A stretch of 64,000 nt of DNA from Lytechinus pictus (lineage: Eukaryota): the NCBI RefSeq assembly GCF_037042905.1, contig NC_087249.1, positions 49,972,001 to 50,036,000 on the forward strand, in the 5' to 3' direction. A program made the translations under genes and the position numbers. This document shows, piece after piece, positions 10,399 to 63,521 of the stretch (within the stretch, counting starts at the first letter, position 1; every line of letters starts with the position of its first letter). Below the pieces are notes generated by a model, which made no database searches, was not told the DNA's origin, and saw only the letters and a program-made list of their open reading frames with translations.

Positions 10399-12333
10399 TT
10401 AATGAACTAACTAGCGCCTGCTAGACTCCCCTACTACTAGACTGTCGGCATGTCGCCAGATGTAGGCCCTAAAGGCCTAATTTGACTTTGCAAAACTATC
10501 ATAAAAATTCATAGACATAGACATAGTATCAAATTTCAAACTAGACCGAGGCGATAAACATTTTATTTTAATAACTTAATTTAGGCCTAAAACCCCAAAA
10601 CATCTTTTCCTACATTTTCGTCGTAAATTTTGTGTTTTTGTCCCCCCAAATCTTGGCCAAAGTGCCCACAACGCCACGGCATTAACCAGTCATGCCAGTC
10701 ATGTCAGTCACCATGGTAAAAAGACTTCGGTCCAGAGCAAGTCAAAGTTTAGTCAAGTGACAAGTTTCTTTTTTTTGCTGGGTCCAATTTATCTTTGAAA
10801 AGAAGTCAGTCAAATCAGGTGAAGATTTGAAGTTGTGCCATTACATCAGTGCGACTGCGATGTAACAATTTGAATTTTAGACCACAAGCAAATACATCTA
10901 GATAATGTAGATTTGTATCCTCTGCTCCGGCCTCTAGAAATTCTTTGTCTCCATTTTGCTAAAAAAAAATTTCATGATATCTAATTCCGGTGTTGAATTC
11001 TTGGCAAATTTGTTAGCCCAAATTCAATGCTTTAAAGCCACAAGTGAAAGTTTTTGTTTCAAGCTTCACAATTTCTTATTCAGACTACAAAAAAAATATA
11101 TCAAAATTTTTTTTGGGAGGATGGGGCTGCCACTTTCGTTATTTCTTCTAAAGCATATTATTTTGCCAAAGACAATGGTTCATTTCAAATTTAAGGCAGC
11201 ATGGTATTAGGAGTGCATGAGTTCTTTCAGAGCACATATTTTAGAGCTCAGTTTTGTCTATTAATCTCTCTAATCAGTTGGAGAACATTGCCAAGATAAG
11301 AAATTAAGAGTCTCCCTACCACAATATCATCTCCAAAAAGGAGCCTAATATATAAATTTGAGTAATGCTATCCAATTTCACATGTAGTCTTAAATTTGAG
11401 AGACCATTTTTAAAAACATTTAGTGCAAAATGATTACTTTGGCCTCTCATAAAAACACAGATAGATGTTTGTGGTTAATTGTGCAAAATTGGTACTCAAA
11501 TCTGTTTGCTCAGAATGGACAAAAAAGGTTGTATAAACAATATAGGGATTTTTTTAGATTCGTAAGTTGACAAGTGAACTGCTACAGTGTGTAGTGACTA
11601 GTAGCTGATGTCATGTTAAGGTCCTCAACAAAAAGTTGATTTGAATAATATAGAGAAATATTTATTGAACATTTGGATGAAATTTCAAAGGTTTATTGAA
11701 ATTACGATTATGACGTTTGAAATTTTGCTTATTTTTCTCATAACTAACAACTTGGTGAATACTGTGCATACTCCTAAATTTAGGAATTTCCCTGAAAAAG
11801 TCTTTTTTTGGTTGGGTATGAATGTGCTATTAATTATCAGGTACCTCTATTTTGCCTGAATTCTCATAAATTTGTGGGTATTCTTGTAATTAAGTGTGTA
11901 TGAAAGCAACTCTTGAAACTTTAAAACTTTTCCTTTCGTAAAGAGATAACAGGCACAGCGCATAATGATTTATATTTTATGTAAACAGAGCAGGTATTTT
12001 GTGGGTTCTTTGCCTTCTACTGCTCCATGAAATACATGTAGTCTCCTTTTGTTCCCTTGAAAATGAGCTACAGTACCCTTTATATGTGGGACCAAGCTCT
12101 TCACTTTCTACTGCAATGTTTTATAAATTCATCTACTAGATGGGTGTTTATACAGGGTCCATTGTTTCATGTCATTAGTTCTGTTTGGAAACAGTATGGG
12201 TCTTGTGCCTTGATCAGCACTGCAAATAAATGGCAGGGACTGTATAAACAAAGACACTACCCTCATTTAATAAAATCATAAACCTGAATGCAAACACAAA
12301 ACATGTAGGAGAACAATTGACTGCAGTGATTAA

Positions 12334-12871
12334 AGGTCAAGTCCACCCCAGAAAAAAGGTTGATTTGAAGAAAAAGAGAAAAATCAAAGAAGCATAACAC
12401 TGAACATTTCATCAAAATCGGATGTGAAATAAGAAAGTTATGACATTTTAAAGTTTCGCTTACTTTTCACAAAAAAAGTTATACATGTATACATGTACAA
12501 CTCAGTGACATGCAACTACATGTATTTCTTTTGTTTTTTACAGATTTGACAATAAGGCCCTCTTGTTAGAACCACAAAATGTTGAAATAATTGCACATGA
12601 TCCGGGAGGAATAACTCTGTTTCACATGACAACGAGGAGAAAATGAGAATATTACATATTCCATGTAATGAAATACAAAGAAATAGAGAGTGGATGATGT
12701 CATCAGTCCCCTCATTTGCATACCGACCAGGATGTGAATAAATTATTACGTGAAATTAGGCAAAACTTTAAAATGTCATAACTTATTTTACATCTGATTT
12801 TGATGAAATTTTCAGTGTTACCCTGTATGCCTGTTTGATTTTTCTCTTTTTTGAAGGGCTGGACTTCTCCT
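12334..12871. mobile_element. TTAA-flanked Kolobok-type MITE
   Basis: TTAA|AGGTCAAGTCCA ... TGGACTTCTCCT|TTAA with long imperfect arms; same family as 14870-15456. Confidence 0.8.
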
Positions 12872-13026
12872 TTAAATAGATTTAGGGTAAGGCAAGGGCA
12901 CATTTTTTATCACATTTACAGCACACATGGAAAATATTTTTATAAGGGTGCAAAAAAATATTAAGGCAAGAGAAATGGCATTGGGCTAATCAGTATGGCA
13001 TGCCATGCATACTTATTTAAACTTAA

Positions 13027-13621
13027 AGGGGAATCCAGCCTTGGCCATAAAATGTTGTGTTGGGAAGGAGAAAAATAAATTAAACAGAATGGTGAAAGTA
13101 TGAAAGAAATCGGACAAGCAATAGGAAAGTTATAGCTGCTTTAAAATTGAGATCACTAATACTATGTAGATTTCAAATTGGCAACTGGGTAATTAAATTA
13201 TGACAAGGGGCAAGGACAACTTTCCCATAGGCCATGTATTTTATTATCAGGGATTTGTGGTTTTCTCTTAAGTACCCATTCCCCTGGGGCAGTAATCTGA
13301 ATATAACCCAGGTAGTATATCGTTTTATGTCCTGATGAAATAAAAATATAATTTGAAATAAAACTTATGGGAAAAATGACATTTTAGCCATAATATGTAT
13401 TGGAGTACATGGAAGAGTAGTCCTTGCCTTACATAACTATGACATCCCATATGCGGCCAATTTGAAGTCTCCATGGGTATAGTGATTACCAATATTTATA
13501 TCTTTTAAAAATTCATAACTTTCTTGTTTTTTGTCCAATATTGTTCAAACTTTCACCCATTAACTTGTCTGATTTTTGTTTTCTTTATAAAAACAAGTTT
13601 TTATTTGGGTTGGATTCCCCT
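13027..13621. mobile_element. TTAA-flanked Kolobok-type MITE
   Basis: TTAA|AGGGGAATCCA ... TGGATTCCCCT|TTAA. Confidence 0.85.
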
Positions 13622-13687
13622 TTAAAGGCATGGGTTAAAATTACAAAGGTCTTAAAAAATACTGAACTATGATGAAAAATCACCTAG

Positions 13688-13758
13688 GAAGAGGAAGAAG
13701 AGGAAGAAGAAGAGGAAGAAGAAGAAGAGGAGGAAGAGGAAGAAGAAGAAGAGGAGGA
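13688..13758 (+). repeat. (GAA/GAG)n microsatellite
   Basis: Direct reading; intronic. Confidence 0.95.
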
Positions 13759-14056
13759 AATTGTCATGCTAAAGCCAGGCTCACAATATGTGCCTTTGGA
13801 AGGTGACATTATTATGCTCCTGCAACATTTGCTCTGGACAGTCTTAATATCTCGGAGGGCATAGGGTTAGAGTTAGGATTGTATTTGTAATAGAGTTTTT
13901 GGTTCAGAATTATGTAAAGATACGGAAAAGGGTTTATTTAGTTTTGGAGGTATGTAGGATTTATGCTCCGCTTAATGTGCAGATTTTCCATCGGAGCAAT
14001 TGTCGCCGGAGCATATGTCATGGAGCCCTTTGGAAGCACATAGAGACTTTGAATGA

Positions 14057-14329
<273 letters not shown>

Positions 14330-14869
14330 TAATCGCTAATTTGAAAGAATAATTCTGATAGGTTCCTGGTCAGTCCCCTGAGCAAAATGCGCATGCAACA
14401 ACGATTTTGATAGGCTATTTAATTTTAGCGATTAATTGCTAACCTTCGTGTCATGGGAAACTGGGGATATTTCACAAAGAGTTGAATGTGACTTTGAGTC
14501 GTGCTTGAATACCGATTGGCATGATATGTAACACGCAATCTTCTTGGTTAATGCACAGTAGTGCACAGCCTCTTTTAGCATGATTTGATCATTGCGGTGA
14601 TTCCTTTTATACTGCATGCAACTGGGAATTTAAGTTGCACTTAAATCTTTGTGATACACCTCCTTTTTCCAGAGCATTTGGGCCGGAATGGCCAGGAGCC
14701 TTTAACATCAATCTTAGAGATTGACCGTGGGGCTGATTTTTATGATTGATCTCACAAAATAATCAATGCAATCAATCATAGAAATCAGTCACATGATCTA
14801 TCGCTAAGCTTTATGTTAGAGGGCCCTGGTTGGACGAAAGGTTTCAAGGGGTGAGCTATTGAGTGTTAG

Positions 14870-15456
14870 AGGACAAGTCCAACCCAACAAAAAGGTCGAT
14901 TTGAATAAAAAGAGAAAAATCCAACAAGTATAACACTGAAAATTTCATGAAAATCGGATGTAAAATAAAGTTATGACATTTTAAAGTTTTGCTTAATTTC
15001 ACAAAACAGTTATATGCACATCCTGGTCAGTATGCAAATGAGGAGACTGATGATGTCATCCACTCACTATTTATTTTTTGTTTTATGAAATATGCTAATT
15101 TTCTCATTGTCAAGTGAAACAACAATTAATTTCTCCCTGAACATGTGGAATTAGCATATTTTAGTCAAGTTGGTCGCTATTGTCAAATTTGTAAAAAAAT
15201 TGAAATATTGTATAATTCAAACAATAATAAACAAAAGAAATAGTGAGCAAGGGACATCATCAACTATCTCATTTGCATGTCACTGACTATCTCATTTGCA
15301 TGTCACTGAGTGGTGCATATAACTATTTTGTGAAAAATAAGCGAAACTTTTAAATGTCATAACTTTCTTATTTTACATCTGATTTTGATGAAATTTTCAG
15401 TGATTGTTTTTTCTCTATTTATTAAAATTAACATTTTTCTGTGGTGGACTTGACCT
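14870..15456. mobile_element. Kolobok-type MITE, second copy of the 12334 family (opposite orientation)
   Basis: TTAG|AGGACAAGTCCA ... TGGACTTGACCT|TTAT; internal homology to 12334-12871. Confidence 0.8.
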
Positions 15457-15641
15457 TTATTAATGGTTTGACCCCTCCCTCAGCCTTTCTCTGCAGGGCA
15501 CCTTTCAGTAAATACATGTACTACCCTACTGGCTAAATTGAACTTGCATACATGTACCCCCCCCCTCTTTTTAATGGGGGGGGGGGATGCTGTTATCCTG
15601 TACCCTTCTAAACATGTCATTTTTAATGAAAGAGAAGTAGG

Positions 15642-15889
15642 CCCAAGGTAAACAGAAAAAAAAAGGAAGGTTGCCTTCATAGACAGATTTCAAATTTCAA
15701 ATGGGAGATAATTTTTGTGGCCATTGATGTACAGGTATTAAAGTACATAAAAGTATTTAACTATAACCCAAGGTAAACAGAAAAAAAAGGAAGGTTGCCT
15801 TTATAGACAGATTTCAAATTTCAAATGGGAGATAATTTTTGTGGCCTTTGATGTACAGATATTAAAGTACATAAAAGTATTTAACTATA
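15642..15889 (+). repeat. Recent tandem duplication, ~125-bp unit x2
   Basis: CCCAAGGTAAACAG...TTAACTATA starts at 15642 and at 15767, with few substitutions. Confidence 0.95.
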
Positions 15890-15914
15890 GACAGGTGGCC
15901 ACTATATTAAAGAC

Positions 15915-16185
15915 TAGGCCCGTTTCGGGTACATGTGTACACGCAGGGTCAAGTCAGTGCACGTGTACTAAATTCCATCACCGTGTATTGGTATGAAGTG
16001 ATAGGGAATTGCAGCCTTGTGGAATTGGAAGGCTCGCACTGTGCATGCTTACTGTACTTTCATTCATAAATTTGTAATGAATACATTACGCAATTTGTTT
16101 ATATCCTACAACGTGTACACGTGTACCCGACCGAAAAATACGCCGTGTACACGTGCTTCAAAAATGGACTTTCAAAACAGGCCTA
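15915..16185. mobile_element. hAT-like MITE
   Basis: TAGGCCCGTTTCG / CAAAACAGGCCTA TIR (11/13). Perfect 8-bp TSD TTAAAGAC. Internal repeated GTGTACAC motifs. Confidence 0.85.
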
Positions 16186-16428
16186 TTAAAGACAGCTTTG
16201 ACTGTTCGTATTACGTCATTGGCCGAGTCAAAGCAATGTTTTAGAGCAGATTGAATGCAACGTATGAGTTATTTACCTCTCCTAATTAGTCAAATTTTGC
16301 TCTTGCCCCCAAATATTTCATGACCAAGAAAAAAAATATTATTTTCTGATTATGTCAAAATCTATCACAAACTTGGATTTTTGTAATAAAACTGTCAAAA
16401 TTTTTTTTTCTTTTATTGCTCATTTCAG

Positions 16429-16651: not shown

Positions 16652-19600
16652 AAGGATGCAAGTGGGATGCAGCAACGTTTGCAGCATTGCCGAACTGCCT
16701 CTGATGGCAATTGGACAAGATTGATATTCATCAACACTATATCAATAGGCTGGATCGGAATTCGGCCAAGAAACTTTTGCACAGGGCTGCGTTGTTCCCG
16801 CTCAGAGCACCGAAAGCATTTGGGTACTCTGCCGTTGAAGCCAATGATTACATTCGCTTTGGTGCAATATTTTAGAAGATCAAGCAATTTTTGTATACCA
16901 GGGACCCTTTGCCGTGTTTCCGTCTTTTGAATGTATTTTGATATTATTGTATAGTAAGTTGAATTTTCAATTTGAATCAATATTATAATGAATGTGTCCA
17001 CATTACATGGATATGCCATTTCATGTAATGTCATTGTAAACAATGTAATTATGGGGGCAACCGACAAGTCTGCTGGGACTGGGGCCCGGCTTGGGGTTGG
17101 TGCTTAGGAAGTTTGGTTAGTAACACAAATTGATGAAGAAATGCAAGTGAATAAGCTGAAGTCAAAATTGTCTCTTTTGACAAGAGATATGAGTTATTTT
17201 GGAAATTAATTTCATGAATCATCCATTGCAAAACACATTCATAAATATCCCAACACGATAATCGTGTTTATATTATAATTCAAATAATTGAAAAGAAATT
17301 CAACAGACATTGCTACCAAAATTGTTGTCTCGACACAGGAGGCAGTAATATTGTCCATGCAGAAATAATTACTGTATGGCCACTTTTAAAAAGGGACAAT
17401 GTATTTGATTTAAATGCAGATTTCAGTCAATAATTATTCATGTACTCAAATTTTGATTTAAACGTTTCTATTTTGATCTTGTCATACCCCTAGGGCCCCA
17501 ATGCATGATAACAATGCTCAACAGCTAATTGAAAATTAAGGATTTCATGGAAATTATTCAAGTTAGCATAGCATAGCTGATTAGCTGATAAACTTTTATG
17601 CTATTGCTAACATTCAAAATTATTGAAAAAATCTATTAAAATAACCAACCCGCTAAAAGTTACCAGGCATGTCTACAGATCCCCCCATCCATTCCATATA
17701 CATTTTACCATGTAAACATGAATATTTTTCAAAGGAAAGCTCTATACAACCTTTTGATTTGATTTTTTATGTGTATAATCATATATTTCACACATATATA
17801 CTACCAAAAGGGTAAAATTTTATATAATCATATTACATTTTTTTTTCTTTTTTGGAGGGGTGGGGGGGGGGGGGGGGTAGACAAAAAAAAAATGATATTG
17901 AATAGAAATACATTGTAGCAGTAGAAAAGATGAAATGATAATTGGGTACCCGATCAAAATAAAATGTCATGCACTTTTTCTCCTTTTTATATGATACATA
18001 ATTTTCTGTGATGAGGAATCAATTGATATGAATTGCAATTGTAATAAACACCATAATTAGCATAATAATATGCAATAGGGATATATGTGGACCTCTGTGT
18101 ATATCCATAAAGGCTGAAAAACATATTTGTAAGTCAAGTTCTCAAGGGTTTTCTATGACGAGGAATTTATTGCAGTCATCATGAATGGCATAACTGGCAC
18201 ACTGAGCCAACAAGCATTTGTATGGACTTCTTTGTCATTGTATATCTCCCCAAATTGAATAATACAACTCTAATCGGGCGTTCTATAAGGATTAATTTAT
18301 TCATCACATCAGATTATAGCACTTTTACCTGATGCAATTTTCCTCAAAGTAACAGAATGAGCTAACACGTTATGTTGACTTAATCTCAAGAATCATGCCT
18401 TCAAAAATCAAACCAAGATCTGGCATAAGAAATGAAAAAAAACGTAATTATTTTTTAATATTGTATACATCTTAAATTTTTTAATAGTCATCACCCATTG
18501 GTCTGATTGGCTGCCTGTTGGGGAGCTGGTGTCCTCATTTGCTAGAGCTCCTGTGAGTAGTGAGCTGACCGGGCTTGTCCCTTAAATTGTCGGTGAACGG
18601 AGCAGCAAGCATGAGGGCACCGGGCTCAACAGGATGTAGCTAAGAATTCCGAGAAGTGATGCAAATATACAATCAAATGCGTTTAACTTTTGCATGACAG
18701 AATTTTTAGGTTATGAAGTTTAAGTTGTAGATTTGTTTATATTTGTAGCTTGTTAAAGAAAAGAAATTTTGCTGAGCCATTGGATGAGCAAGCTTTGATG
18801 GTACAATATGTGCGTTCTATAAATCTACACTATTATCATTATATATTTTTTTGTTTATCTAGAAGGAATGAAAAAAATAAGAAATATACATGCCAGATAT
18901 ACATGAGAATAAACTGTCAAGTTAAAGTAAAATTTACATCTGTCATTTATAAATGAAATCCTTGTCAGTGAAAGTTGTATTTTTCAAGATTTTTTTAAAA
19001 GCAATGACAAGAAGTCCACATACATGTACTTATGCTATTCATCATTAAATTAACTATTACATATATTACATATAAATGAAGTCCTTGTTAGAGAAATCAC
19101 CAGAGGAGCTGTATCATTTATGTTTTAGGATTGGTGGTGATTGCATTTAATATTTACATTCATAAATTAATTCCTCATCAGAGAAAGGCTTAGGAGAGCA
19201 GTGTTTTTCCTGAATTTAAAACCTCATAATGTGTACAAATTCTATTCATGATAAAAATCTTAATGATGACACCGCAAAACCGATCAATATCCAAATATTT
19301 GCATTTATTCTTGACTGAGGTGTAGTAGACTCTACAGAGATTGCAGATATTGTACAATCCCCGTGTGTGGATTGCATGGTGCTGCTACGATGTTTTTTCA
19401 GGGCTATTATCTTAAGTGTTTGAAAATTTGTCTGAGTCTGCACTGAACAAAATCATGGACCGTACTGTACAATGATTTTGAATCTGTATTATCATCATAC
19501 GATCATTGTGTATCGCCCTCAGGAAGTTGTATGATTTACAGGGATGCAATCACCCTACGAGCACCTTATTGTGACCATTGACCGAATATATATGTCATGA

Positions 19601-22600
19601 ATATCAGATAAGAAAGGGTGAGGTAATTTGTTACAGGGGGCATTTCTTTATTGCAGCACAAGTGGGACAATTATAAAGGGCATCAAAAGTATCCCAGAGA
19701 TAATGATAAAGCTGCCAAGTAGTACTGAAATTTCACTATTTAGTACTAAAAAGTGAGGAGAATACTGGAAAATATTGATTTCTAAAATTCAAGTTTTATG
19801 AGTTGTCCTAGGATGGTATTTCTTTGAAAATACTTTTATTACCAAAAGAATGATTTAAGCTTTTAAAATACTGAAATATTCTTCTTAAGGTTGGCAGTTT
19901 AGCTTTTTTTTTGGGGGGGGGAGGGGGGGGGTGGGGTATTCAGGCCAGTCAATTGAGCATCCACATCTTCCCCCTCACGATCTTGGGTTATTACATTAAT
20001 AAGGTTTAATAAAAAGGAAAAGTGGTTAATATTTCAAGGTCGCAGAGTCAATACTCTAACTATATTGCATTGTGTAATGCAGTCAAGACCTGCCAAGGTT
20101 TCTCCACTTGTTTTATATTAAATACAGGAGATTTTTGTCATGTAAATCAAATTGAATGAACTATAAATGTCGGTTAAGACCTTCTGGCCCGTTTTCTGAA
20201 TTCTGGTTTAGTTTTATATAAACCCTTGTCCAAACTTGTATTTTAAATATGACACATTCTGACACTTGCTCTATAACAGTAGAGGTTCAATCCTGAATAC
20301 ATTTGGTGCCCAAATCCATGATTTTCTGGGAATAAATATTTCTTCACCATTAATTTTTATGAGGAATGAATACAATTTAAAAAGAAATATTCAATGTAAA
20401 CAAAATTTTGTAATTTTTGGCTTCATGTTATTTCAGTACCGAGTTCAATAGACCAAGGTCAAACTCGACTTCAGAATATGGGCCAATGTCAATTTGTCCA
20501 AAATATGTTCATTATCATATACACATGTATACATGTGACTTTTTATGCATTTGCTGCTCATGAACCCATTTCTTTTCTGTGATTTATGATAATTGTAAGG
20601 AGCAGGTCCAAGCTATTATTATTTTGCTGACAGTTCAAAGCATCTGATTTTCAATTATATTAATGGATGCATACTATGTAGGTGGCACTAGGAGTATTAA
20701 GCAAGAACAATTTGTGTGTAAGGTTGGAAATGATTTGCAAGTATTGTCCGGCTTAGATTTAAGATGGTGTGGTAATAAGGCTTAATAGATAATTGTAGAG
20801 TTAACTCTAATAGTCCTGGGGTTGGGTTTCCCATAATGGCTCTCTGAATATTTTTAGTGATATTTATCTGTAACTTTAAAGGACTGCGCCATGCCGTTTG
20901 GTGACTATTTCCTTTCAAGTGTCAAATTCATATTTTTCAAAAAGAAAAGGGCAATCTACACATACGAATTATGGAAAAAAAAACAATTAAGTACATAAGA
21001 AATCGATTTAATAACAGAATCTTTTTCAAGTACAATTGTTCAGAATGCTATTATGAATAATTTTAAAAACTCAAACATTTGGCACTATAGGAGCTTTAAT
21101 ATTAAGTGACCTGAAGCAAAAAAAGAATGATTCATGCCAAAATTAGTTAATTCATTCATGTAAACAAATATAGAGATTGAGAGAAATTTAGCTACGCAAT
21201 CGCATAATTTATGTCATTTTTCTACCATCATGCAAATTTTGTTGTGATTCCACAATCTGTGGTTGAGATCTGACTAGGGGCATAATGGCCCAACCGGACA
21301 AAACTCAAAATACCCCAGGATTATTAAGGTTGGTTTTGCCACTTTTTCTTGATGAAGTTAGTACTGTAAAAGTTGAAATTTCTTGCACGATTAATTTTTT
21401 TGCGCTTCTAATTTTGCGGTCATCACCTGATGCACTTGAACATTATATAGTACGTGTACACTGGACTAGCGTCTGATACATGTGTGATGGATAAGCACAT
21501 ACAAAGTGTGTTACGTGCACTAAAGATAAGGGGAAAAGTACATGTACAATACACCCAACACTTCAGGAGAAGGTTTTTCTTGCGCATTTCGCTTACGCAT
21601 TTTGGCATTATATTTATTCATTTTTGTTTTTGCGCCTTACATGTTTCGTGCAAAATTTTCCACTTTTACAGTATCTGTGTTGACTAATTCTGCAAAAGTG
21701 AATCCAAAGGTTTTCCAGAGTTTTTGCCAATTGAGTTTTGTCTCCGGTTTTTTACCCTGGACCTACTTGTCGTCGAATTGTTTGACACAGATACCTCCCC
21801 CCCCCCCCGAAAAAAAAAATTGTTCACGATATACTATTATAAAATTTATTTTTATTCTGTATAATTTTGGTATCAAACTGAATTTTTGATATTTAGAGTA
21901 CAAGCAGATACTATTTTAAGCGCACTTTAAATATACCCTCTACTCCCATAAATTGAGATTTTGTTGGTTTGGGGAGTTGCACTGATATTCTTGCAATTTT
22001 TGCTATTTTAGAAAAATATGAAGTTTGAACATGAAAAATATATGTAATCTTTTTTTTACAAAGTTATCAACAATTTCTATTTTTAAGCTGTCCTAATGCT
22101 AATGTACATAATTTAGGAATAATTTCGATTTTATTTTTCAAATTATCAGTAGACCCAGTAATACGGTGCCACTCCTGTGATTCTGTTTTTATTCAGACAA
22201 CCCATTACGTAGAGTTGGAAATGTGCTTATGTACATGTATACATGTATTATCATATTTAAAATCTTAAATTGTTAATGATACTAGCAAAACAATTTGGGG
22301 GTGTTTCAAAGATAATTATATCTGACTTCAAAGTCATGCTTAAGTGTTGATGTGCACATGATACTTAATGAGCATTTTAATTAATTTATTATACAGTAAA
22401 GCACATCCCATGAATGGGATCCAACATATACATGTATGGAGATCCATTATTTTCCATATGCAACTTGGAATTTAAAACACCCCTTTGAATTGTTCTCTTG
22501 TGTCACATTAATGTCAGATAGCTTGGACCTGCTCTGTATTATTTGATTATCTGTACTATATACTTTGCTTTATAACCATATTATTTTTTCTTTCTCGAAG

Positions 22601-25600
22601 AAAATTGTAAGACCAGCAGCTGAGAAGATTCATTCAAGTGACAGGACCATAGCAGTTGACCTCATTGATTGATGGTGGTACTAGGCCCGACACCTCACAA
22701 ACATGGCTTGCTGTCTGGTTTGAGCTGGGGTCTTCCTGTCAGAATCACACAATTAGTGACATCACTACTGAAAGATCTACTTTTTAGTGTGCAAAGAGGG
22801 GCACTGGACACTGTTGTGCATGGTATACAGCTTCCATAATGTAAGCGCTTTATTCATGATTTTAATGATATTCTGTGTAGCCTAGAGTATGCAAGACAAT
22901 GCCATTGGTTTTCCAGAAATGATTGCTCTGAGGGTAGAATTATTTTAGAGGTAGAAAGTATTGTGCAGCAATCTCAAACACAGGCTTTTAAAATTCTTGA
23001 AGGCAACTTGGATATTGCTGTCTTTCTTTATATACCTCTCTGTACTATCTGCTCTAGCTGTTGGTCAAATGTTATCTTTGTTTCACACTGTCCCAACATG
23101 ATATCTGACATGACTGATTTAATAATGTGGTAAATAAGACATTAAAAAATCGTTTACAAGGAAATTTATATATTTTTTCAGACTTTGATCTCATTTTTTA
23201 TATAAATTGCAGAGCTATGATACATATAGAGCAGTGCAAAAAATGTTGCAATAAATCTTCCCTTTTTCTGTACATTTTAATTTTTGGACAGACTAATATG
23301 AGTTAATTTTTCAATCATTTTGGTCCTTTCCCCATTCACCATGAACCTAATTTTTTTTTTAAAAATGCCGAGTGTGTATCCATCATGTAAACACAGAATG
23401 CGAGAGATTTAGCCAGACCTGTGTTGGATGATAATGATATTGTGATGAAGGTGGCTTCTCAATATCGGTTCGTCTGCCACAAAAATAAAAACCAAACAAA
23501 ACAAAAAGACAAAAACTTTTGTCTTCTATACTCAGTCTCCGATAAAAAGTTTAACTCATTTTATGAGGACTGTGCGCTTCAATGGTTTTTCCACAATGCT
23601 CCTTAAACATTGCAATACAAGTTAGTATGGAATCTAGTCTTAGAAGTGCAATGTCAAATGTTTATTTCTATCTGCCAGCAAGTGTTACTTGCTTTTCAAG
23701 AGCCTTGCCTACTGTAGTGTTTCTAGTTGACCCTTATCACTATTTTGTATTGGGCCTTTTGCACGTTTGATGGAGCAGTTTAGCCGAGATGGCTTTGGAG
23801 CTTAGTGGCAGTGTTCAAGGTCAATCAAGAACCGGTCTGCATTGCAAAGAAGAGAAGAAAGGAACTGTTGACCTACGTTTGAAGAGAGCGCTGTTGACTT
23901 CTGGAAATACATTTCAATTGCCTGTGACATTCTAGTACTCTCTGATCAAAAGGAATAGTGTTCTTTAACCTATGTGTTGGTATCCATAGCTCTTGAAAAC
24001 ATGATGTAAGTGACTTACCACCCCAAAACCAACAATAAGTTGCCAGAGAAGGCTCTTTGTAAATAACCAACATAGCATTTGGTCTTTAAAAAAAAAAAAA
24101 ATTAGTTATCTTAATAAGTATTACTTTTTCTTCATACTCTCATAATTTGAAGTCTTAAAATTGAAAAGACAAGATACAACAATTTCTTGACACCATTTTT
24201 TGCGGACTGCTTGGAATTTTCAGCGAGATTGCAGTGTTCACATATCATGCTTGAGTGAACCCCGAAATTCAAACCTTGTTTTCTCTGAACTTCTGCATTC
24301 AATCAAGTACTTGAAAGGATTATTGTTGATCAACTTTGAAAAGTTTAATATCATTTTAAAGCTTAGGGTGTGCTTTTTCGAGCTCAATGAAAATCTCAAA
24401 ATTCATTTAGGGTGACTTATTGTCGGTTTTAGGGTGGCTGGTCACATTTGGTAGATATTACAGCACTCTGATATGCATGGCTCTTCCTAGCATAGTGCAA
24501 CCTGGATTTGACTCTTGTTTTATCCACATTTCCGTCTGTGAGTGATCCACCAGATTTTCAACCTTCTAAATTCTACATTTTCCATTCTTTCCACGTTTAT
24601 TCAATCATTGCATCGTCTGGTATTTTTTCCTCAGGGAACATTTTTAGTAAGTTATATCCTGTGTGAATGAGAATTGCATTTATTCATGTGACTGAATTCA
24701 AAAGGGGTTGCTGTATTTGGGAAGGCATTTGATGGAACTTGCCATTATCTGATTTGGTTGATCCAGTTGTCTTTCAAATTCACATTTCTTTACTCGGCTT
24801 CAAAAAAACTTATTCGGTTCAAACCAGAGCTGCTTCTTGAACAAAGCTGAAAAATTGGTTGTAGTCGGGCTTTGTGTACTGTGGTCATAGAGGATTGTGA
24901 CATTGCCTATGGGAAGGAACTAGCGTGGGACGATCTGACTATGATGATCAATGAAAGATGCTTGTAATTCCTTCAACAGACCCGTCAGCATTCTCACATG
25001 GTGTTGCTATCCTCAAGGAGTTATAACAAGATTCTTCAAGACCTGAACATGGTATTCAATGAAAGAGGAGTGTTGTACCTTGAACAGCCTCAGCAGGATT
25101 CTCACAGGGATTGTGGCAGGGAGTAAAGGGCACTCTGGCCTATTGTAACCAAGTTTTCAAAGTTTATGTTTGAAGATAAGGAGTGTAATTGGATGACTCT
25201 CTCTAGCAGATTGTTACAACGATTTCTGACATCCAGTCTCGAGCGAGTTTTTGACATTCTATTTGATGCTCACTGTGAAATTTGACATTTCTTCTTCCGG
25301 ATGATTGTTACATTTGTTATTGACCTTTTGCCGAAAGAAGTGGATTTCCGCATCCAGTCTGGAATGAGCTGTGGAAATTTGTATTTGGTGCCATTTCTGC
25401 AATTCAATTTTTAGCTGAAGAAAGTGTTTCCTACATCTATTCTGGAAGGAGTTTTGGAAATTTTCTTGGGTGCTCTCTCAGAAATTTTGACATTTTGCGC
25501 TTCACTACTAGGGAACATGCATTGCACTGTGATGATTGATGGTGCATTGTGGGATATAAAGTGCACTTTCTCAGGATGAGCCTATCTTGAGGGTTCGACC

Positions 25601-37495: not shown

Positions 37496-38168
37496 TCCGA
37501 AATGATTCATCAACGCTTCCTGCTTCACATGAAAAGATGTAATGCTCTAAAATCATCATGGCTCATGCAGTTCATAAAGTGAAGTAAAAACTGAGATAAT
37601 TGGGGGTCAGGCAAACAAAAGAGTTTTTATTTTATGGCATCGCCACAGTGGCATTCTGCAACTATCCCACATATAAAGGACTGATAATCGCTAAGCTAGT
37701 TTTTCCAAAATCAAAATGAAATAGAAAAAAACGTTGGAGGTATGTATGCATTAAAGGGGTGGTCCAGGCCAGGTTTAATTTATATCCACTAGATAGACAA
37801 AAACCTTCTCTTTCCTATACTATATTTTTTTTAAGAAATAAGAGGCACAGTTATTTTTTATTGAATTTTCAATTTTGCCAAAATCATATTCTGGCACGAG
37901 TCTGTACGATCCCAGAATGCAATGCGCAGCTTTTTCTGTGACGTAGCATCTCCACTTTGGCTTCGCTGGCTGCTGCTACGAGCGCGAGCGAGTAGCTAGC
38001 TAGCTAGCTATCGCTCGCACGTATGCGTATAGATCATCAGCGCCGGCCGCATACGTACGGTATTAGCTACATGTAGTTTTCGACTTGCATTGATTGCGGC
38101 CACCGTCGACCCTGTAATTCACAATTTGTTTGTTTCTCGCCGTTTATTTCATAATTTGAACAATTAAT

Positions 38169-41949: not shown

Positions 41950-42605
41950 AGGAATCAATATCGAAATGACACAATGGGACAGCAGGAAGTAGGAGACAGC
42001 TCGGTAGAAGTAGGCTAAGGAACAGGTGATATCGAGCTCTAAGGCTTTGCATAGGTCCTTGATGGCAAGGGTGTGTGCCTTGACATAGTACTTCAGTGCT
42101 CCTCTGTAGAAAGAAATCAATATAAACATGGAAAATAACATAATACAAGAAATAGATGGCAGCCAGGTACAAGTACATGTAGGCTAAGGAACACATGGTA
42201 TCTAGCTTGATGGTTTGACATACATGTAGATCCTTGACAGCTAGGGTGTGTGCCTTGATGTAGTACTTCAGGGCTCCTATGCAAACAGGAGGAAAAACAT
42301 AGAGGATTCAATATCAATATTGTACAATTGCAGGACAAGAAGTAGGAGACAGCCCTGCTGAAATAGGTCAAGGAACAGGTAGTATCGAGCTCTATTGCTT
42401 GACATACGTCTTTGACAGCTAGGGTATTTGATGTAGTACAGTACTTCAGGGAACCAGAATCAATATCAACATGACAAAATCACATGATACAGGAAGTAGA
42501 AGACAGCCCATTGAAGTAGGCTAAGGAAGAGGTAGTATCGAGCTCTATGGTGTTACATACATGTACATGTGACAGGTAGGGTATTTCAGAGCTCCTCTGC
42601 ATCTG
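41950..42605 (-). repeat. Four tandem partial duplicates of the acceptor + 5' half of TTC6 exon 41711-41903
   Basis: Nearest copy (200 bp upstream) reads tacag|RGALKYYVKAHTLAIKDLCKALELDITCSLAYFYRAV. The further copies are decayed. Confidence 0.92.
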
Positions 42606-44220: not shown

Positions 44221-44230
44221 TTGTACTTAC

Positions 44231-51214: not shown

Positions 51215-52160
51215 TGCAAATCAATCAGAAAAGCTAGCCTTACAATTAATCACTCAGTGATAGGCAAATGGACTTGATCATACAGCTGATTTCTACAAGG
51301 ATTGCAAACTGTGATCAAAGCAATCAATCATACAAATTATCCTTATGATCAATAACTTACACAAAACTTTGTGCTACTTGGAAATTGATCAAACAGTTGA
51401 TTTGTTCCACTGAACAAGGCAATCAATGATACAAATTAACCTCACATTCATTCACTCACGTGTTACATGGAATTCATCACAGTAGATTTGTACAATTGAT
51501 TGCACATAGCGATAAATTCAATCAAATCATAAAAGTCAACAATACAATCAATCACTTGGCTTTGTGTAACATGGAATTGATGACATAGTTGCTTTATACA
51601 AATGATTGCATGCAGTAGTAAATGCAATCAATCATAAGTCAACTTTATGATCGATCACTTGGCTCTATGTAACATGGAATTGATCACATAGTTGCTTTAT
51701 ACAAATGATTGCATGCAGTGGTAAATGCAATCAATCATAAAAGTCAACATTATGATCAATCACTTGGCTTTGTGTAACATGGAATTGATCACATACATGT
51801 AGTTGCTTTTATTGCATGCAGTGGTAGATGCAATTAATCATAAAAGTCAACTTTATGATCAATCACTTGGTTTGTGTAACATGGAACTGATCACATAGTT
51901 GCTTCATGCAAATGAATGCAATTAATCATAAAAGCCAGCATTATGATCAACAGCATAGCTCTGTGTAACATGGTTGCCTTATACAATGGATTGCATGTAG
52001 TGATACATGTAAATGAAATGGATAAGAAAAATAGGCTTGCAATCAATTGCTTAGCTTTTTATTCGATGTAACTGATCATGCAACTGATTGCACAGTGATA
52101 AAATGCAATCACTCACAAAATATGGCCTTACAATCAATCACTTAGCCTTGTGTTACTTGG
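51215..52160. repeat. ~103-bp minisatellite, ~9 diverged units
   Basis: GTGTAACATGGAATTGATCACATAG anchors at ~51377, 51466, 51570, 51673, 51778, 51880 and 51969. Confidence 0.9.
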
Positions 52161-54923: not shown

Positions 54924-55429
54924 CTAGAAGAAGGTGGATTATAAAAAAGGTATATTTACATGTGTCTAGTGGACTCCATATTTTATTTATCATGCCAATT
55001 CCTTTGCACTTGTGCTACATGTAGCTACCAACCTTTAGGTCTCGTCTCAAGATGCACCTTCGTCTGATTGCCTTTAATGAGTCATTATATTCATTTTTTG
55101 CAGTTATAATAATTAATATTCATTTTGGTAGGGGTTTTTTTTGGTCTCATCAGCTCATTAGGCAACTGCATTGTAGATACATGTACATGTATTTGCACTC
55201 TATAAAGTTTAGGACCGAGTATGATGTATAATAACAAATCATATTGGTAGTCTCATTTGAATATTCTACCTTCCCTTATACCAGGGAAGAGAGAGAGGGA
55301 GAGAGGAAATGTAAAGAGATAAATATATATATAGAGAAAGTAATAGACCAGCTTTACCAACAAAACTGATACCAAATCAACTGATGATGTTCCTTCATTG
55401 GAAACAATGTAATAGCTTGGGTTGGTCTG

Positions 55430-58181: not shown

Positions 58182-58577
58182 CAGGGTTCCCAGCTTTTCA
58201 AGAAAACAAAATTCCCTGATGAAGTTTTAAAATTCCCTGATAATTATTTAAACCCATTCCCAGTTTCACATGTACTCTAAGCTGTTGCAGTGAATTATTA
58301 CATGTATTTTCAGTATAAAAACAATGATGTAAAACTAATTAGTACCACCATAACCAGTCATTCAATGGATGTTGTTTTGATATGCAAAAAAATATAACAG
58401 AGTCTGATTGACTACCGTGCTTTCGACTTTTGGGCTGATCAAAATTCCCTTATTTTTCCCTCAATTGAGGCATTTTTCCCTGATTTTAGGTATTTTTTAT
58501 CAAATTCCCTGATTTTTCCCTGACCGGAAAAAAGTAAAACAATTTTCCCTGATTTCCCTGATGGACTGGGAACCCTG
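58182..58577. mobile_element. MITE with 5-bp TSD (hAT5-like)
   Basis: 12-bp TIR CAGGGTTCCCAG; TSD AAGTT; many subterminal TTCCCTGA repeats. Confidence 0.8.
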
Positions 58578-58687
58578 AAGTTAAATATAAAAGTTCAAAA
58601 GCACTTTCTCCTTTCATCTGTTTTTCATTTGATATTGAAAGAATTTCACAGTACATAACTTTATGTTTAAAATAGTGAAATACTTAC

Positions 58688-58715
58688 GGGATCCCAATGC
58701 TTTTTCTTCTTTTTC
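58688..58715 (-). CDS. TTC6: TTC6-like 28-nt microexon
   Basis: tacag|G KKKKKHWDP|gtaagt; bridges phase 2 to 0 between its neighbours. Confidence 0.7.
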
Positions 58716-58874
58716 CTGTACAGTAGAAAGATATGTCAAAATATAAGTATCCAAGGTGACATGTCCATAAGGATAGCAGATGACAGAATGCATCAATAGA
58801 AATCTTACCCAATACTAATGGTTACTAACACATTAGAATTGTATGCATACCAGTTGTGCAAATAAATTTCTTAA

Positions 58875-59252
58875 AGTGATTGGTTAACATTGGTTTGACT
58901 TTTAGAAAATCTGAGCTAGAAGGTCACACTTGTCACCTGTGTCTGTGATATGTTACAAAAATGAAGCCCAGAAAAAATTGCGTTCGAAAATAATTATTTA
59001 GTGCTTCAAAAATTGAAATATAAAGTGACCGAAAACACCATCTTAATTTCATCCCATACACTTATGTGTACTATTTAGGCGTCTATAAGACGCCTATTTA
59101 CAAAATTGGGGTTTGCCTTGTAGTTTTAGCTTTTCATTCTCAATAATGGTTGTTTTCAGGGTTTATTAGTTCTAATACATGCACTTGTACACATGTTTCA
59201 TCTTGGTTTGAGAATTTTTTAAATCGGCTGCTCACAAAGTTAAACAATACCT
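58875..59252. mobile_element. TTAA-flanked Kolobok-type MITE with imperfect TIR
   Basis: TTAA|AGTGATTGGTTAACATTG ... CAAAGTTAAACAATACCT|TTAA. Confidence 0.6.
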
Positions 59253-59327
59253 TTAACAACTGATGTGTTTACACTGAACTACAAAACATAACTTGATGTT
59301 CTCTTGAAAAATGTGAACGTCACTCAC

Positions 59328-59400
59328 CCCTTGCGAGTGGGGTAGATGACATATTTCATGCCGGCATCTCTGGCTAACTGTGCAACAGATGGTCCCTCGC
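59328..59400 (-). CDS. TTC6: TTC6-like exon
   Basis: EGPSVAQLARDAGMKYVIYPTRK; catcag/gtgagt. Confidence 0.8.
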
Positions 59401-59689
59401 CTGATGGAGATAATAGACAAAATAAAAAACACGGAAATAATTACAGAGCTATTGTGAAAATTAAAGGGGACAGAGTATATTAAAGTTATATGATCATTAC
59501 ATGTCTGAAAAGTTACAAGTTATCTGAATTAATCCTTGGCACATTACTGTCGCAATTTTACACAATCAAACAATTAAACAACAATCAAAATAATTAGTTT
59601 TGTCCTTTACCTTTACCCTGGAGAATCTAGTAAATGACTAAAGTTCTTGGGTAATATCTATACAATATGGTAAAATATGGAAATCACAG

Positions 59690-60521
59690 GGGCCCGTTGC
59701 AGAAAGAGTTGCAATCAATCGCAACTCTAAAAATCATGCACAACTTGATTTTCAACAGACGTACTCGCCCATTTGTATTTTTATTTAATCCTTCCTCATA
59801 TCGACTACTGTTCAACTGTTCGGGGATCATTAAAAGTGAAAGATTTGCAGCGACTACAGAAGTGTCAAAACAAATATTGTTGTTTGGTATTAGATGCAGA
59901 CTACTATACCCCAGTCCAGAATATGTTGCACTCTCTGAAGTTACAATCTGTTAAGAAAAGAGTGGATTATGATTACCAAATACTTATGTATAAAACTTTA
60001 AATGGTCTTACTCCTGGTTATTTATTGCAAACAATGCCTCTGAGACCTAATCACTATCCTACGAGATCAATCTCATCACAACAATTGTATCTCGCAAAAC
60101 CAAGAACCGAGTATAAAAAACAGTCAGTCTCCTATATAGCAGCAAAACTAGTTAACTCATTACCAGTACCCATTATGTGCTCTGCTTCACTTCCTATCTT
60201 TAAACGAAACGTCCGTAAATTCCAAGCAAGCTAATTAATTATTTCTACTGTTTCTGTCATAGTACGTATAGGCCTTACCCCCCTCCCCTCATTGTTATTT
60301 GCTTATTATGTATATATTATTTTTGTATTGTGTATAATTGTGTATGTTATAATTGTGATTGTATAATGTTCCAATTGTGATTGATAGCAGGGCTCCCTTG
60401 TAAAGCAGGCCTCTGGCTTGAATGGGACTACCCTGCTTTTTATAAAGAAAACATGAATAAATAAATAAATAAATAAACAGCGCACATTTGGGACTTCCGA
60501 TTGATTTTCTGCAACGGACCC
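59690..60521. mobile_element. Small Harbinger-like MITE split by a LINE
   Basis: CAG|GGGCCCGTTGCAGAAA ... TTTCTGCAACGGACCC|CTG. Confidence 0.78.
59760..60476 (+). mobile_element. 5'-truncated L2/CR1-clade LINE (ORF2 C-terminus + 3'UTR)
   Basis: ORF 59773-60234 reads LILPHIDYCSTV..LQRLQKCQN..MYKTLNGLTPGYL..KLVNSLP. 3' GCAGGG..CCCTGC hairpin and (TAAA)n tail. Confidence 0.88.
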
Positions 60522-60533
60522 CTGGATTCATAT

Positions 60534-62653
60534 TTTTTTTTGTATTATTTTTTTATTTCCCTCCTATAGGGCATACATTTGCATAAACATTTTAATAATG
60601 AAATAAATGACATAATACAATGCATATCATACACACATAGTATAATTTTGAACAAAGTAGGCCTACAGGGCGTTTCAAACAAAAGGAAACCATCCCTAGA
60701 GTGGCCATGCCCACCTGCTCACATGCAACAGCAAAAACAAATGAGCTCCGAAAACGGCCCCTCCAACAATAATTGATCACCTCTCATACGAAACACACTG
60801 TATATACATCATGAAAATATGTTTACATTAAACAAAAATACATATCAAGGTCCGGAAATCTTATTACAAAATGACAAGTATTCTTTCGAAATTTACCCAT
60901 TTTCTATCAAATTTATGTGTTTTGTTTTCCATAATACTAATTTGCCTCTCATTTTTGTAACATTTTCTTATTTATTGTTTAATTTTCTCAAAAGTAGGTA
61001 TGATCTTTTTCACACGAGCAGAGTATACTTGTTGTTTCGTCCAAATTATCAAACAATTTAAAGCATCGTTTCTTTTTTCTATGAAACCAAACAAAACATG
61101 TAAATATACAACAGAAAGTTTTATTCTAAAGCTTGTTAAATTGTATAACCAGTCTGTAAATCATTCCCAGATAAGATTTATCACATGACATTGATAGAAA
61201 AAATGTACAGTGCTTTCTTCTTCCCTTCCACAAAAAGAGCATTTTGCATCTACAGTTATTTTCATCTTTACAAGATCCTTATCCAAATATAATATCTTAT
61301 TTAGTAGTCGGTACTGAAAGTACCTCATTGTAGTATAAGTTGTACATCGAAACATCATTTTAAAATAATTGCTCATATCTCTGGTGTCCATTGAAATGCC
61401 ATTGACAAGGGATCTATTGCACAATTTAATCAAGTTATCATCATTTTCTTTTAACATGATATGATATACATGTCTACATCCTTTTTTGTCCTTCAGCAAA
61501 TTATGTGAGATATAAGCAGGGCATAATGGTTCATTAGATTTCTTATTGCACTATTCAAATGAGCTTTATACTTACATTTAATGATCTGACATAGGGCATA
61601 ATAACGAAGAAACTGAATTTTCATTGAAAATCTTTTTTCACTCTTCTCTTTCCAAAAGTTTTCCATTCTCATCTAATAAATCGTTAATAAATCTAATGCC
61701 TTTGTCCCACCATTCCTTTAAGAATATACCTTTTCCACCAATTTTTACATAAGAATTGTACCATAAAGGAATAGCCGGCCAAAAAAGAGAAGTACACTGA
61801 ACATTTCAAATAAAGGAGGAAACTATAATAAAGATTTCCTTCCAAAAACTGTTTTGGACCATGAGTGATAGTTTAGTGAAATATATATCCCCTTTACCCC
61901 ATTCTAATGTTACTAACGGTTTTAAAAATGCATACATTAAATGAGAAACTTCTTCACATGAATTTGACAGTATTCTTCTTATCCAAGACAGCTTCAAAGC
62001 TCTAGAAAAATGTCCAACATCAATCATTTTAAGTCCACCATTTTCATAGTTACAAACATCTGTTTCCTGCTTATTTTGTTGGGTTTCCCCGGCCTTCCAT
62101 ATAAATTTATAGAAAGACACATTTACTGATTTAAGAAGATGTTCAGACGGATTAGGAATAGACATAAATAAATGATTGAATTGTGAAACAAGCAATGATT
62201 TGACAAGGATTACACGACCAAATACAGAAATATTACGCTTTGACCAAGATATTTGTCTTTTTAGTTTATCAAATGCTCTATCATAATTGAAATCAGGGAG
62301 ATTTTCAGATCAATACAGAAGTCGATTCCTAAATATCTAATTAATTTCATGTTAATCAACATTATATCGGTCCCAGGCAAGTCAATCTGAATAGTTTTTT
62401 TCAGAGACCCAATACACAATGTTTGCGTTTTAGTTGTGTTAACCTTTAAACCAGAATATTTCGAGAACATGTCTATAAGGTCTAGTGCATTTTGCAAACT
62501 TTCCTTACTATCGAGGAACAAAATGGTGTCATCTGCATATTGCAATAGTTTGTATTCTTTTTTTTTATCAATAACTATGCCTTTAATTCATTGAGATTTT
62601 CTTACTAACATTCCTAAGATCTCTGCACACAGCAGAAACAAATAGGGAGAATT
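60534..62653 (-). mobile_element. 5'-truncated, frameshifted L1/Tx1-clade LINE
   Basis: SPYLFLLCAEIL, RT motif QYADDT, YENGGLKMID and zinc motif CSFCGREEESTVHFFYQC. A-rich tail at ~60534-60558. TSD CTGGATTCA (60522-60530, 62654-62662). Confidence 0.9.
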
Positions 62654-63050
62654 CTGGATTCAAATAAAATGTCTTTATCATCACCCATAATTTTTTTCAG
62701 CATTAAAAGAGATATTTAAAAAAAAGGTATGAACAGAAATTTAAGACAGAGAGTGCCCCCAAATAGAATTATCAAGAATATAAAAGTTTGTAAAACAAGA
62801 CTGGAGGAGAGAGAAATAGAGAGAAGAATGGGGAGGGGAGAAGCAAGAAAGGAGGAAAGATAAAGAGAAGGATGAGTGGGGAAAGAGAACGACAGACAGA
62901 GGGAGAGAAAATAAGAAGAAGGAGTAAGAATAAGAGAAATAGGGAGAAAGAGAAAGTTGGAAGAGAGAAAGAGCGAGTCTTGATGAATACTAAATATTGA
63001 GAGTTCTTTCAACTGTTTAACACTGAATTAATCCTTATCAAGATACTTAC

Positions 63051-63114
63051 TGAGTTTCTTTTCTTCTTCCTTCGGCTGTGTTGATGTTTGATCAGGTCCA
63101 GTAAACATCTCAAG
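63051..63114 (-). CDS. TTC6: TTC6-like exon
   Basis: LEMFTGPDQTSTQPKEEEKKL; ttacag/gtaagt; phase fits. Confidence 0.72.
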
Positions 63115-63521
63115 CTGTAAGATTTAAAATAAAACAACACTTAATGACCTAAATGTATCATTCACTCCATGAAAAACAAATAAACACATGCATGATTCCA
63201 GTATTGCCTAATGTTATACAATGAGTCTGATTGCAACAATGGTAGGTTTAGTTTCAATATGTTGTATACAGATTCAAAAGCGCATTGACATTTTACTTTT
63301 GAAATGCTTTCAACAGCAGGCAACTTGCATAAACACTTTCAAGAAGATCAATCTTTTCACTTCAGTGACCTTGAATTACAGTAAAAGTTACACTTTAACT
63401 GACTTTTGTATTACATGTATGACCAACAGGCAACCCAGGGACAAAATTATTGTCTTTTTTTCAGAGGCTACTTGTCATAACCTACATGTACTGTGTCAAT
63501 CTGCAACATTGGATAAATTAC

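Follow-up and report, generated by a model that had tools for sequence, protein, structure and literature searches.

Tc1/mariner transposons are excised by cuts that leave 3' overhangs of 2-3 nt, and end joining turns these into a footprint in which the overhang sequence is flanked by a TA duplication (PMC3878927). The footprint of Sleeping Beauty and Frog Prince is C(A/T)GTA (PMC3878927), and footprints of 2-4 bp are on record for Tc1/mariner elements (PMC7913693). A comparison of Asian and African rice counted the insertions and excisions of DNA transposons and identified excision as a major source of variation (PMC4423477). CpG methylation lifts transposition more than 20-fold for Sleeping Beauty, Frog Prince and Minos, whose excision it also increases (Jursch et al. 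2013, PMC3680223). We analysed a stretch of 64,000 nucleotides from the sea urchin Lytechinus pictus (NC_087249.1, positions 49,972,001 to 50,036,000 of the forward strand; hereafter the window), which contains ZCCHC10 and the 3' part of TTC6 and in which the octamer TACATGTA is strongly over-represented. The copies of this octamer are, with good probability, scars which an IS630/Tc1/mariner-type cut-and-paste DNA transposon left at its donor sites; we infer the source element from the scars.

Abundance and distribution of the octamer

The window contains 39 exact copies of TACATGTA, the first starting at 12033 and the last occupying 63483-63490 (all starts are listed in Table 1). Based on 100 dinucleotide-preserving shuffles the expected number is 1.56 (maximum 5), and Markov models predict 2.9 (order 2) or 4.0 copies (order 3), which gives an excess of 10- to 26-fold. 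An earlier preliminary description of the same DNA, made by eye, had reported about 35 copies against about two expected, or roughly 15-fold: the excess is upheld at 39 copies against 1.5-4, and the count itself is corrected. Among the 8-mers of the window TACATGTA ranks as the most deviant, second only to G8. The 30-base flanks are unrelated across all copies, and a repeat family as carrier of the octamer is ruled out by these 39 distinct flanks.

The copies are not spread over the whole window. In the field from 12033 to 63490 their density is 0.75 per kb, and none is found in positions 1-12032 (P=2e-4 given the TA content); the scar 'landscape' of the preliminary description is thus accurate for 12-64 kb and not for the entire window. 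Double sites are more frequent than expected (two abutting and one overlapping, i.e. three vs 0.28, P=0.002), as are gaps of 100 bp or less between copies (seven vs 3.0, P=0.02). The excess of doubles and short gaps fits local hopping. One-mismatch neighbours of TACATGTA are mildly enriched (66 vs 37-53 expected), and an excess that is only mild fits young scars. The assembly gap at 43912-44220 falls within a scar-free stretch of 7.2 kb (length as assembled, N gap included); the flanking sites, 42809 and 50051, are each more than 1 kb away and no claim made here crosses the gap. The open reading frames (ORFs) listed over it (43871-44464 on the minus strand and 43903-44289 on the plus strand) are artefacts of translated N.

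Insertion of six bases at TA

Paralogous copies inside the window were compared by self-alignment. The four cases of a TA replaced by TACATGTA which had been pointed out beforehand (42221, 42174, 51794 and 52004) are each +6 at TA, and the doubled copy reported at 12482-12497, in a miniature inverted-repeat transposable element (MITE), fits a TATA of which both TAs were hit. The MITE paralogs (14907-15459, and the inverted arm within 12371-12851) lack the scars found at 12482-12524. In the pair described beforehand as exon and duplicate, the +6 is confirmed, and the roles of the copies are now defined: the unscarred copy is the real TTC6 exon (41708-41914), and the scarred 'exon' at 42221 belongs to a set of three pseudo-exon duplicates located in an intron.

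The locus of the sister species L. variegatus (L008) was reached via the 90% protein cluster shared with L. pictus ZCCHC10 and aligned to positions 1-27.5 kb of the window; the aligned columns sum to 16.5 kb and hold 412 indels, and the substitution divergence is 10.8%. Twelve clear species-specific copies of TACATGTA are exact gains of CATGTA, +6 each and +12 for doubles. The other species has TA in ten of these and a one-base variant of TA in two: opposite the L. variegatus sites 17741 and 25468, L. pictus shows CA and CG, respectively. The tabulation of 6-bp indels against a sister species, suggested as a check in the preliminary description, therefore returned CATGTA gains at TA as predicted, with CA or CG in two cases. 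Sites 12033 and 15549 are ambiguous in the alignment, and no Lytechinus site requires more than one substitution.

Of the roughly 16 Lytechinus octamers that could be aligned, only one or two are older than the species split. The octamer at 22429 is identical to its ortholog at L008 21301, hence this scar is older than the split. The second case is TACATATA at 23221, which is either a decayed shared scar or the counterpart of a chance octamer that arose by substitution in L. variegatus. Judged from the alignment, most of the putative scars of the two Lytechinus species are younger than the split. In the CpG-poor part of the alignment, about 13.7 kb, each lineage has gained 4-8 new scars, which corresponds to about one scar per 100 substitutions, to 3-4% of all indels and to a large share of the 6-bp indels between the two species. 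An extension of the comparison to 27-64 kb was sought through the L. variegatus TTC6 protein: a search of cluster representatives led to a cluster headed by an amphioxus sequence, and no Lytechinus sequence was among the best 120 of 160 homologs; a look-up in Patiria gave no match.

The octamer is also found in more distant relatives, and its density falls with phylogenetic distance from L. pictus: 0.6 per kb in L. variegatus, 0.3 in Strongylocentrotus purpuratus and 0.14 in TTC6 of Diadema antillarum (8 vs 1.4-2.6 expected in 57 kb), with no copies above chance in the loci of three further relatives (L001-L003). The two S. purpuratus copies of the locus, L005 and L006, contain 8 and 7 octamers vs about 1 expected in each. 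Seven of the eight in L005 are common to L006, and the eighth (L005 13443) faces a plain TA there. One scaffold of this species (AAGJ06000011.1) carries the whole LIAS-ZCCHC10-TTC6 locus twice, at 7.07 Mb and at 4.71 Mb, with 2.4 Mb between the two copies, whose BLAST segments are 81-96% identical; the duplicate is a retained haplotig or else stems from a recent segmental duplication.

In one of the three further relatives (L001), TACAGTA and TACTGTA, words of the Sleeping Beauty footprint type, are enriched instead (14 vs about 2.3 expected in 20 kb, flanks all unique), and the ratio of observed to expected CpG (CpG o/e) is about 0.8-0.9; L001 and L002 are ENA assemblies, labelled as metagenomes, with a TTC6 ortholog. 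No informative TAC[AT]GTA polymorphism was found among L001-L003, including L002 vs L003.

These comparisons bear on two explanations that involve no transposon. The first is that TACATGTA arises by point substitution without change of length, e.g. where methylated TACGCGTA or TACGTGTA loses its CpG by decay; its probability is negligible. The sites do lie in CpG-depleted DNA, TACGTGTA occurs twice vs 0.3-0.4 expected, and one ortholog pair, TACATATA and TACATGTA, is one base apart. However, TACGCGTA is absent, also from the CpG-rich part, and TATGTGTA, TATGCATA and TACACATA, which decay would yield just as often, stand at background level (2, 5 and 4 copies vs 39). Moreover, the difference is one of length, and of exactly 6, at every one of the 12 clear species-specific sites and in every paralog case. 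The preliminary description had named CpG decay without length change as the observation that would contradict insertion; what is seen is an absent precursor, sister products at background and changes of length. Point substitution, by these counts and alignments, is refuted as the main source and would explain only the 1.5-4 copies expected by chance.

The second is that TACATGTA is a functional motif (a protein-binding site or an intronic signal) kept abundant by selection, which is scarcely more credible. It would agree with the restriction of the octamer to particular domains and with the intact state, in both S. purpuratus copies, of all 7 sites that these share. The flanks of these shared sites, however, are just 0-2% diverged, so that intactness is expected anyway. 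Selection also leaves the uniform +6 at TA unexplained, turnover in Lytechinus is rapid (1-2 of about 16 shared), and sites are found in the CpG-poor DNA between convergent genes as well.

Origin of the inserted bases

The inserts are flanked by TA on both sides in the 12 species-specific octamers and in five comparisons of paralogs or copies (the empty allele being CA or CG in two). A duplicated TA is the target-site duplication typical of the Tc1/mariner superfamily. The CATG core is constant in 39 of 39 sites with unrelated flanks, and it is palindromic, as expected of inverted termini. As the same six bases are inserted whatever the flanks, their template is external and not the local sequence.

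The predicted course of events is as follows. An element would insert at TA, which is duplicated. The transposase would then cut a few bases inside each end, so that the terminal CA and TG remain on the chromosome as 3' overhangs, and end joining that retains both overhangs would produce TA-CA joined to TG-TA, a net gain of 6. Each transposition would leave one scar; scars could thus accumulate while the element stays rare. The earlier characterisation of TA-CA-TG-TA as the classic Tc1 footprint holds as regards a Tc1/mariner-type origin, whereas 'classic' is loose, as the published footprints differ.

Two features of the sites point in the same direction. The first is the choice of target: with all TAs of the same domains as background, A is found at position -3 in 52% vs 34% (126 half-sites, p=0.0005); at -1, A is found in 41% vs 34% and T is depleted (p=0.01), and Y at -2 is without enrichment. 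The target consensus of Tc1 is CAYATATRTG, or AYATATRT (PMC9635669), and the bias at the putatively scarred TAs matches its strongest positions (-3 and -1). The second is the class of junction variants, TACA-N-TGTA, with 8 copies vs 1.5-3.2 expected in the window; two length variants are species-specific insertions at TA (TACATTGTA in L. pictus and TACACATGTA in L. variegatus, Table 1). The extra bases of the variants fall exactly between CA and TG. Taken together, the target-site bias and the variants at the centre of the junction lend independent support to a probable Tc1/mariner-type origin.

The position of the extra bases also bears on the number of bases retained. We prefer CA plus TG, i.e. 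two bases probably kept from each end, to a cohesive CATG overhang of 4 nt, because the extra bases are located between CA and TG and because both enriched octamers of the form TA-NNNN-TA, TACATGTA and the second octamer TAGGCCTA described below, are palindromic, which is automatic for a 2+2 join. A different enzyme could give the same +6, either a TA-targeting element outside Tc1/mariner or a Minos-like one with a 4-nt stagger and CATG ends that ligate cohesively; we consider this improbable. The very uniform junctions, the unenriched +4 forms, the 2-4 bp of recorded Tc1/mariner footprints (PMC7913693) and a source element that was found neither in the window nor by scans for its termini would all be in keeping with such an enzyme. 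Against it, both octamers have palindromic cores, and a 4-nt overhang needs self-complementary ends twice (roughly (1/16)^2); the extra bases of the variants are exactly at the centre of CA and TG, and the target bias agrees with Tc1 and Sleeping Beauty.

The source element was sought in several ways. Scans for terminal inverted repeats (TIRs) reading TA-CA...TG-TA and TA-GG...CC-TA covered the window, L008, L005 and L006, and returned only the MITE at 2883-3265 and chance pairs. No occupied allele, i.e. no TA-CA...TG-TA at a scar, was found when the large indels that separate the two Lytechinus species were inspected (about 16 kb aligned); these indels are Kolobok-like TTAA-AGG insertions or blocks that could not be resolved. 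The MITE at 2883-3265 is a near-complete foldback of 379 bp, non-coding, whose halves are 78% complementary over their full length. It is the sole resident Tc1/mariner-like element seen and only a candidate source. The TA-CAG..CTG-TA element that the preliminary description placed at 2885-3263 is therefore real; it is a foldback MITE which also occurs in L. variegatus and is not tied to the scars. A further MITE family (30766, 45999, 46608 and 55423), seemingly with TA-CAAAG ends, was set aside as irrelevant, as alignment shows its true ends to be of the GGGCCC type.

Several observations weigh against excision by a Tc1/mariner-type element. In about 140 kb of DNA taken from three species, no element with matching termini coincides with a scar or is polymorphic with one, and the ORF listing, the only place where a transposase was looked for, contains none; a rare and highly mobile element need not lie within 64 kb, since each jump leaves a scar while the copy number stays low. 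The one TA-CAGT element, the MITE at 2883-3265, is stable and kept in both Lytechinus species. The canonical form accounts for about 75-80% of the junctions, a high share for non-complementary ends repaired by end joining, and the +4 forms TACATA and TATGTA, the products of annealing overhangs from 2-nt ends, are without enrichment in the window; the latter would mean that repair here keeps both overhangs. Polarity, i.e. insertion and not deletion, rests on multi-copy paralogs and parsimony: only the exons of S. purpuratus align to L. pictus, and its introns thus provide no outgroup for Lytechinus. Finally, much of the CpG-rich DNA at 1-10 kb is without L. variegatus alignment and may be young, which may confound the scar-free domain with age.

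CpG domains and a second octamer

The scar-free first part of the window differs from the remainder in its CpG content. From values of 0.7-1.0, CpG o/e decreases to 0.25 over the interval 9.5-11 kb, which lies about 4 kb into intron 1 of ZCCHC10; across 12-64 kb it is mostly 0.2-0.5 (2-kb bins), apart from three CpG-rich bins (16-18 kb and 36-40 kb). Past methylation in the germline is usually gauged by CpG depletion. In 1-kb bins, 33 copies of TACATGTA are found in CpG-poor DNA vs one in CpG-rich DNA (p=0.009). The relatives show a similar pattern: L. variegatus has no copy in L008 4-10 kb vs 14 from 10 kb on, and S. purpuratus none in L005 6-12 kb.

The second octamer, TAGGCCTA, has 8 copies in the window vs 0.5 expected. 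Six of the eight fall within or on the border of the CpG-rich part (5967-10582), and the others are at 53095 and 60658. About 11 half sites (TAGGCC or GGCCTA) are also present in the 5967-10589 stretch, and site 5967 is common to L. variegatus. A clean +6 was not obtained for TAGGCCTA, the cases at L008 11014 and window 10463 being complex insertions. PIF/Harbinger elements were tried as its source, as Harbinger TIRs begin with GG(G/C)CC (PMC4423477), and rejected: the 3-bp TAA/TTA duplication fails, since flanking t...a is found in one of the eight copies and the duplicated unit is TA.

Concerning the cause of the domain restriction, integration preference and methylation-enhanced excision could each produce it, and both fit equally. 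An explanation without methylation or chromatin is that the first 12 kb are scar-free as young or constrained DNA, which we regard as rather unlikely. In its favour, the part of window 1-10.4 kb with an L. variegatus alignment amounts to only about 2.7 kb, the blocks 411-3352 and 6876-10443 are found in L. pictus only, and promoter-proximal DNA may be under constraint. Against it, TAGGCCTA and its half sites pile up there, so that indels are tolerated and not all of this DNA is young. A promoter-proximal block that is likewise CpG-rich and free of TACATGTA recurs in both L. variegatus and S. purpuratus, and a CpG-rich young element in the gene body bears the scar at 38068; on this evidence the pattern would not be one of age alone.

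A more far-reaching proposal, which we put forward tentatively and with some doubt, is that two TA-targeting families split the germline genome by chromatin, TACATGTA marking only methylated, CpG-depleted gene bodies and TAGGCCTA only unmethylated promoter-proximal DNA. The scars would then be both a fossil map of methylation boundaries and an odometer of transposition (about 1 per 100 substitutions), and the source would probably still be active in Lytechinus.

Gene setting and other features of the window

ZCCHC10 is a plus-strand gene at 6531-16651, with an exon at 14057-14329 that matched annotated proteins of L. pictus and S. purpuratus; TTC6 lies on the minus strand, and its 3' part extends from 32682 past 59.4 kb. 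The two genes are convergent and the 16 kb between them are likewise CpG-poor. According to the exon map, the functional TTC6 exons are without any TACATGTA. Two TTC6 exons (minus strand, 41708-42455 and 49051-49963) are each followed by 3-4 tandem diverged pseudo-exon copies in the adjacent intron; residues 1802-1870 and 1256-1318 of Diadema TTC6 each match several times in the window, in these pseudo-exon arrays. An exact look-up of one ORF of the window gave no match. The features are collected in Table 1.

Table 1. Positions of the octamers, of the putative scars and of other features; numbers refer to the window unless L008 (L. variegatus) is given
Feature	Position	Strand	Remarks
TACATGTA, starts 1-20	12033, 12482, 12490, 12517, 15513, 15549, 19021, 21539, 22232, 22240, 22429, 30119, 31489, 33581, 33689, 34862, 35055, 35215, 35887, 38068		
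TACATGTA, starts 21-39	40730, 41626, 42174, 42221, 42558, 42809, 50051, 51794, 52004, 52791, 53130, 55016, 55178, 55184, 56924, 57718, 58299, 63412, 63483		
Putative scar in intronic pseudo-exon duplicate of TTC6 exon	42221..42228	none	clean +6 at TA vs exon copy near 41827
Putative scar in same tandem array as 42221	42174..42181	none	sister units ...aagTAggct..., +6
Putative scar in unit of 51.2-52.2 kb tandem array	51794..51801	none	sister unit ...acaTAgttgc..., +6
Putative scar in another unit of 51.2-52.2 kb array	52004..52011	none	sister units TA or GTA, without CATGTA
Two abutting putative scars in MITE copy	12482..12497	none	flanks fit TATA, both TAs hit; third scar 12517-12524
L. pictus-only putative scar	15513..15520	none	L. 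variegatus TA, one-base flank difference, without CATGTA
L. pictus-only putative scar	19021..19028	none	L. variegatus TA (L008 ~18571), +6
L. pictus-only abutting pair, TACATGTA twice	22232..22247	none	L. variegatus TATA, both TAs hit, +12
L. variegatus-only TACATGTA	L008 10794, 11815, 17156, 17741, double 17894/17900, 23782, 25468		L. pictus without CATGTA
Putative scar common to both Lytechinus	22429..22436	none	identical octamer at L008 21301
TACATATA	23221..23228	none	ortholog of perfect TACATGTA at L008 22214; equal length, one substitution
Overlapping double putative scar TACATGTACATGTA	55178..55191	none	pattern expected if second event used TA of earlier scar
Variant putative scar TACATTGTA, +7	17909..17917	none	one extra base at central junction; L. 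pictus-only, L. variegatus TA
Variant putative scar TACACATGTA, +8	L008 11682		species-specific insertion at TA
CpG-rich scar-free domain	1..10500	none	o/e 0.7-1.0; upstream intergenic, ZCCHC10 start (~6531), first part of intron 1
Cluster of second octamer TAGGCCTA	5967..10589	none	starts 5967, 7655, 7698, 9547, 9703, 10582
Putative scar in CpG-rich mini-Kolobok element within TTC6 gene body	38068..38075	none	sole TACATGTA in CpG-rich bin
TA-flanked foldback MITE, CAGT...ACTG termini (14/16 match)	2883..3265	none	at orthologous L. variegatus place, L008 ~4576-4729

Other repeats are present in the window as well. Kolobok-like elements or MITEs with TTAA-AGG... termini are found at 6874-10401, 12331-15459, 13024-13624, 14862-15459 and 37752-38802; the blocks 6876-10443 and 14795-15462 (Kolobok-like region) are missing from L. 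variegatus. At 59.7-62.6 kb (minus strand) there are ORFs which resemble the reverse transcriptase of retrotransposons without long terminal repeats (YADD motif); they sit in a scar-free stretch of 5.1 kb (58306-63412), consistent with a young insertion. Runs of G and C are frequent (G8 n=66 and C8 n=38 vs about 4.5 expected) and long ones occur window-wide, e.g. at 15557-15590 and 17860-17880, often arranged as pairs of a C-run, a spacer and a G-run. G7 and C7 are also the top over-represented 7-mers in L002 and L003, and G8 is the top 8-mer at the Diadema locus.

Significance

If the pattern is genome-wide, one transposon family has left a countable record of its own activity. How often elements leave their sites in the germline, which targets they choose and how the breaks are repaired usually escape observation over evolutionary time; each scar would represent a past landing and a departure. 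The sharp switch of scar type at the boundary of CpG depletion makes the steering of integration or excision by methylation or chromatin testable from sequence in animals with mosaic methylation. Echinoid phylogeny and population genetics could also use the scars as presence/absence markers poor in homoplasy, and the source element may prove a highly active transposon suited to sea-urchin transgenesis.

Comparison with known systems

The event is of a known kind, the Tc1/mariner-type excision footprint. Its scale and uniformity (one scar, nearly one per kb, mostly recent) and its partition between domains appear to be undescribed: in the full-text literature we found no paper on either octamer as a footprint, or on genome-scale scars in echinoderms.

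As in Sleeping Beauty and Frog Prince, the TA is duplicated and terminal bases from a staggered cut, joined by non-homologous end joining, would be retained (PMC3878927). The preference for palindromic AT-rich targets and local hopping are further likenesses. The differences are that four bases (CA+TG) and not three separate the TAs, giving +6 rather than +5, and that TACAGTA and TACTGTA are not clearly enriched here (14 vs 7-12 expected in the window).

In worm Tc1, germline footprints are reported by Plasterk, in 1991, to have been mostly +4 or heterogeneous, unlike the single +6 form that dominates here. No Tc1-like transposase or element is tied to the scars of this locus, which is a further difference from Tc1/Tc3. 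The likenesses to Caenorhabditis elegans Tc1/Tc3 are the TA target with A at -3 and -1 (PMC9635669) and, as far as the termini can be predicted here, the CA...TG ends; the 2-nt stagger of these elements would leave exactly CA and TG (PMC3878927).

The rice survey, which likewise used an alignment of sister species, is the nearest precedent (PMC4423477). Rice footprints, however, are complex and found beside known elements (PMC4423477), whereas the scar described here is uniform, among the most over-represented 8-mers and far denser (0.75 per kb), with its source unseen. As for scars that favour methylated DNA, the experiments on methylation used plasmid donors in human cells, Tc1 itself was unresponsive, and methylation is deduced here from CpG depletion; unlike in these respects, the methylated Tc1/mariner donors of the inverted repeat/direct repeat (IR/DR) type nevertheless offer a tested mechanism for such a preference (PMC3680223).

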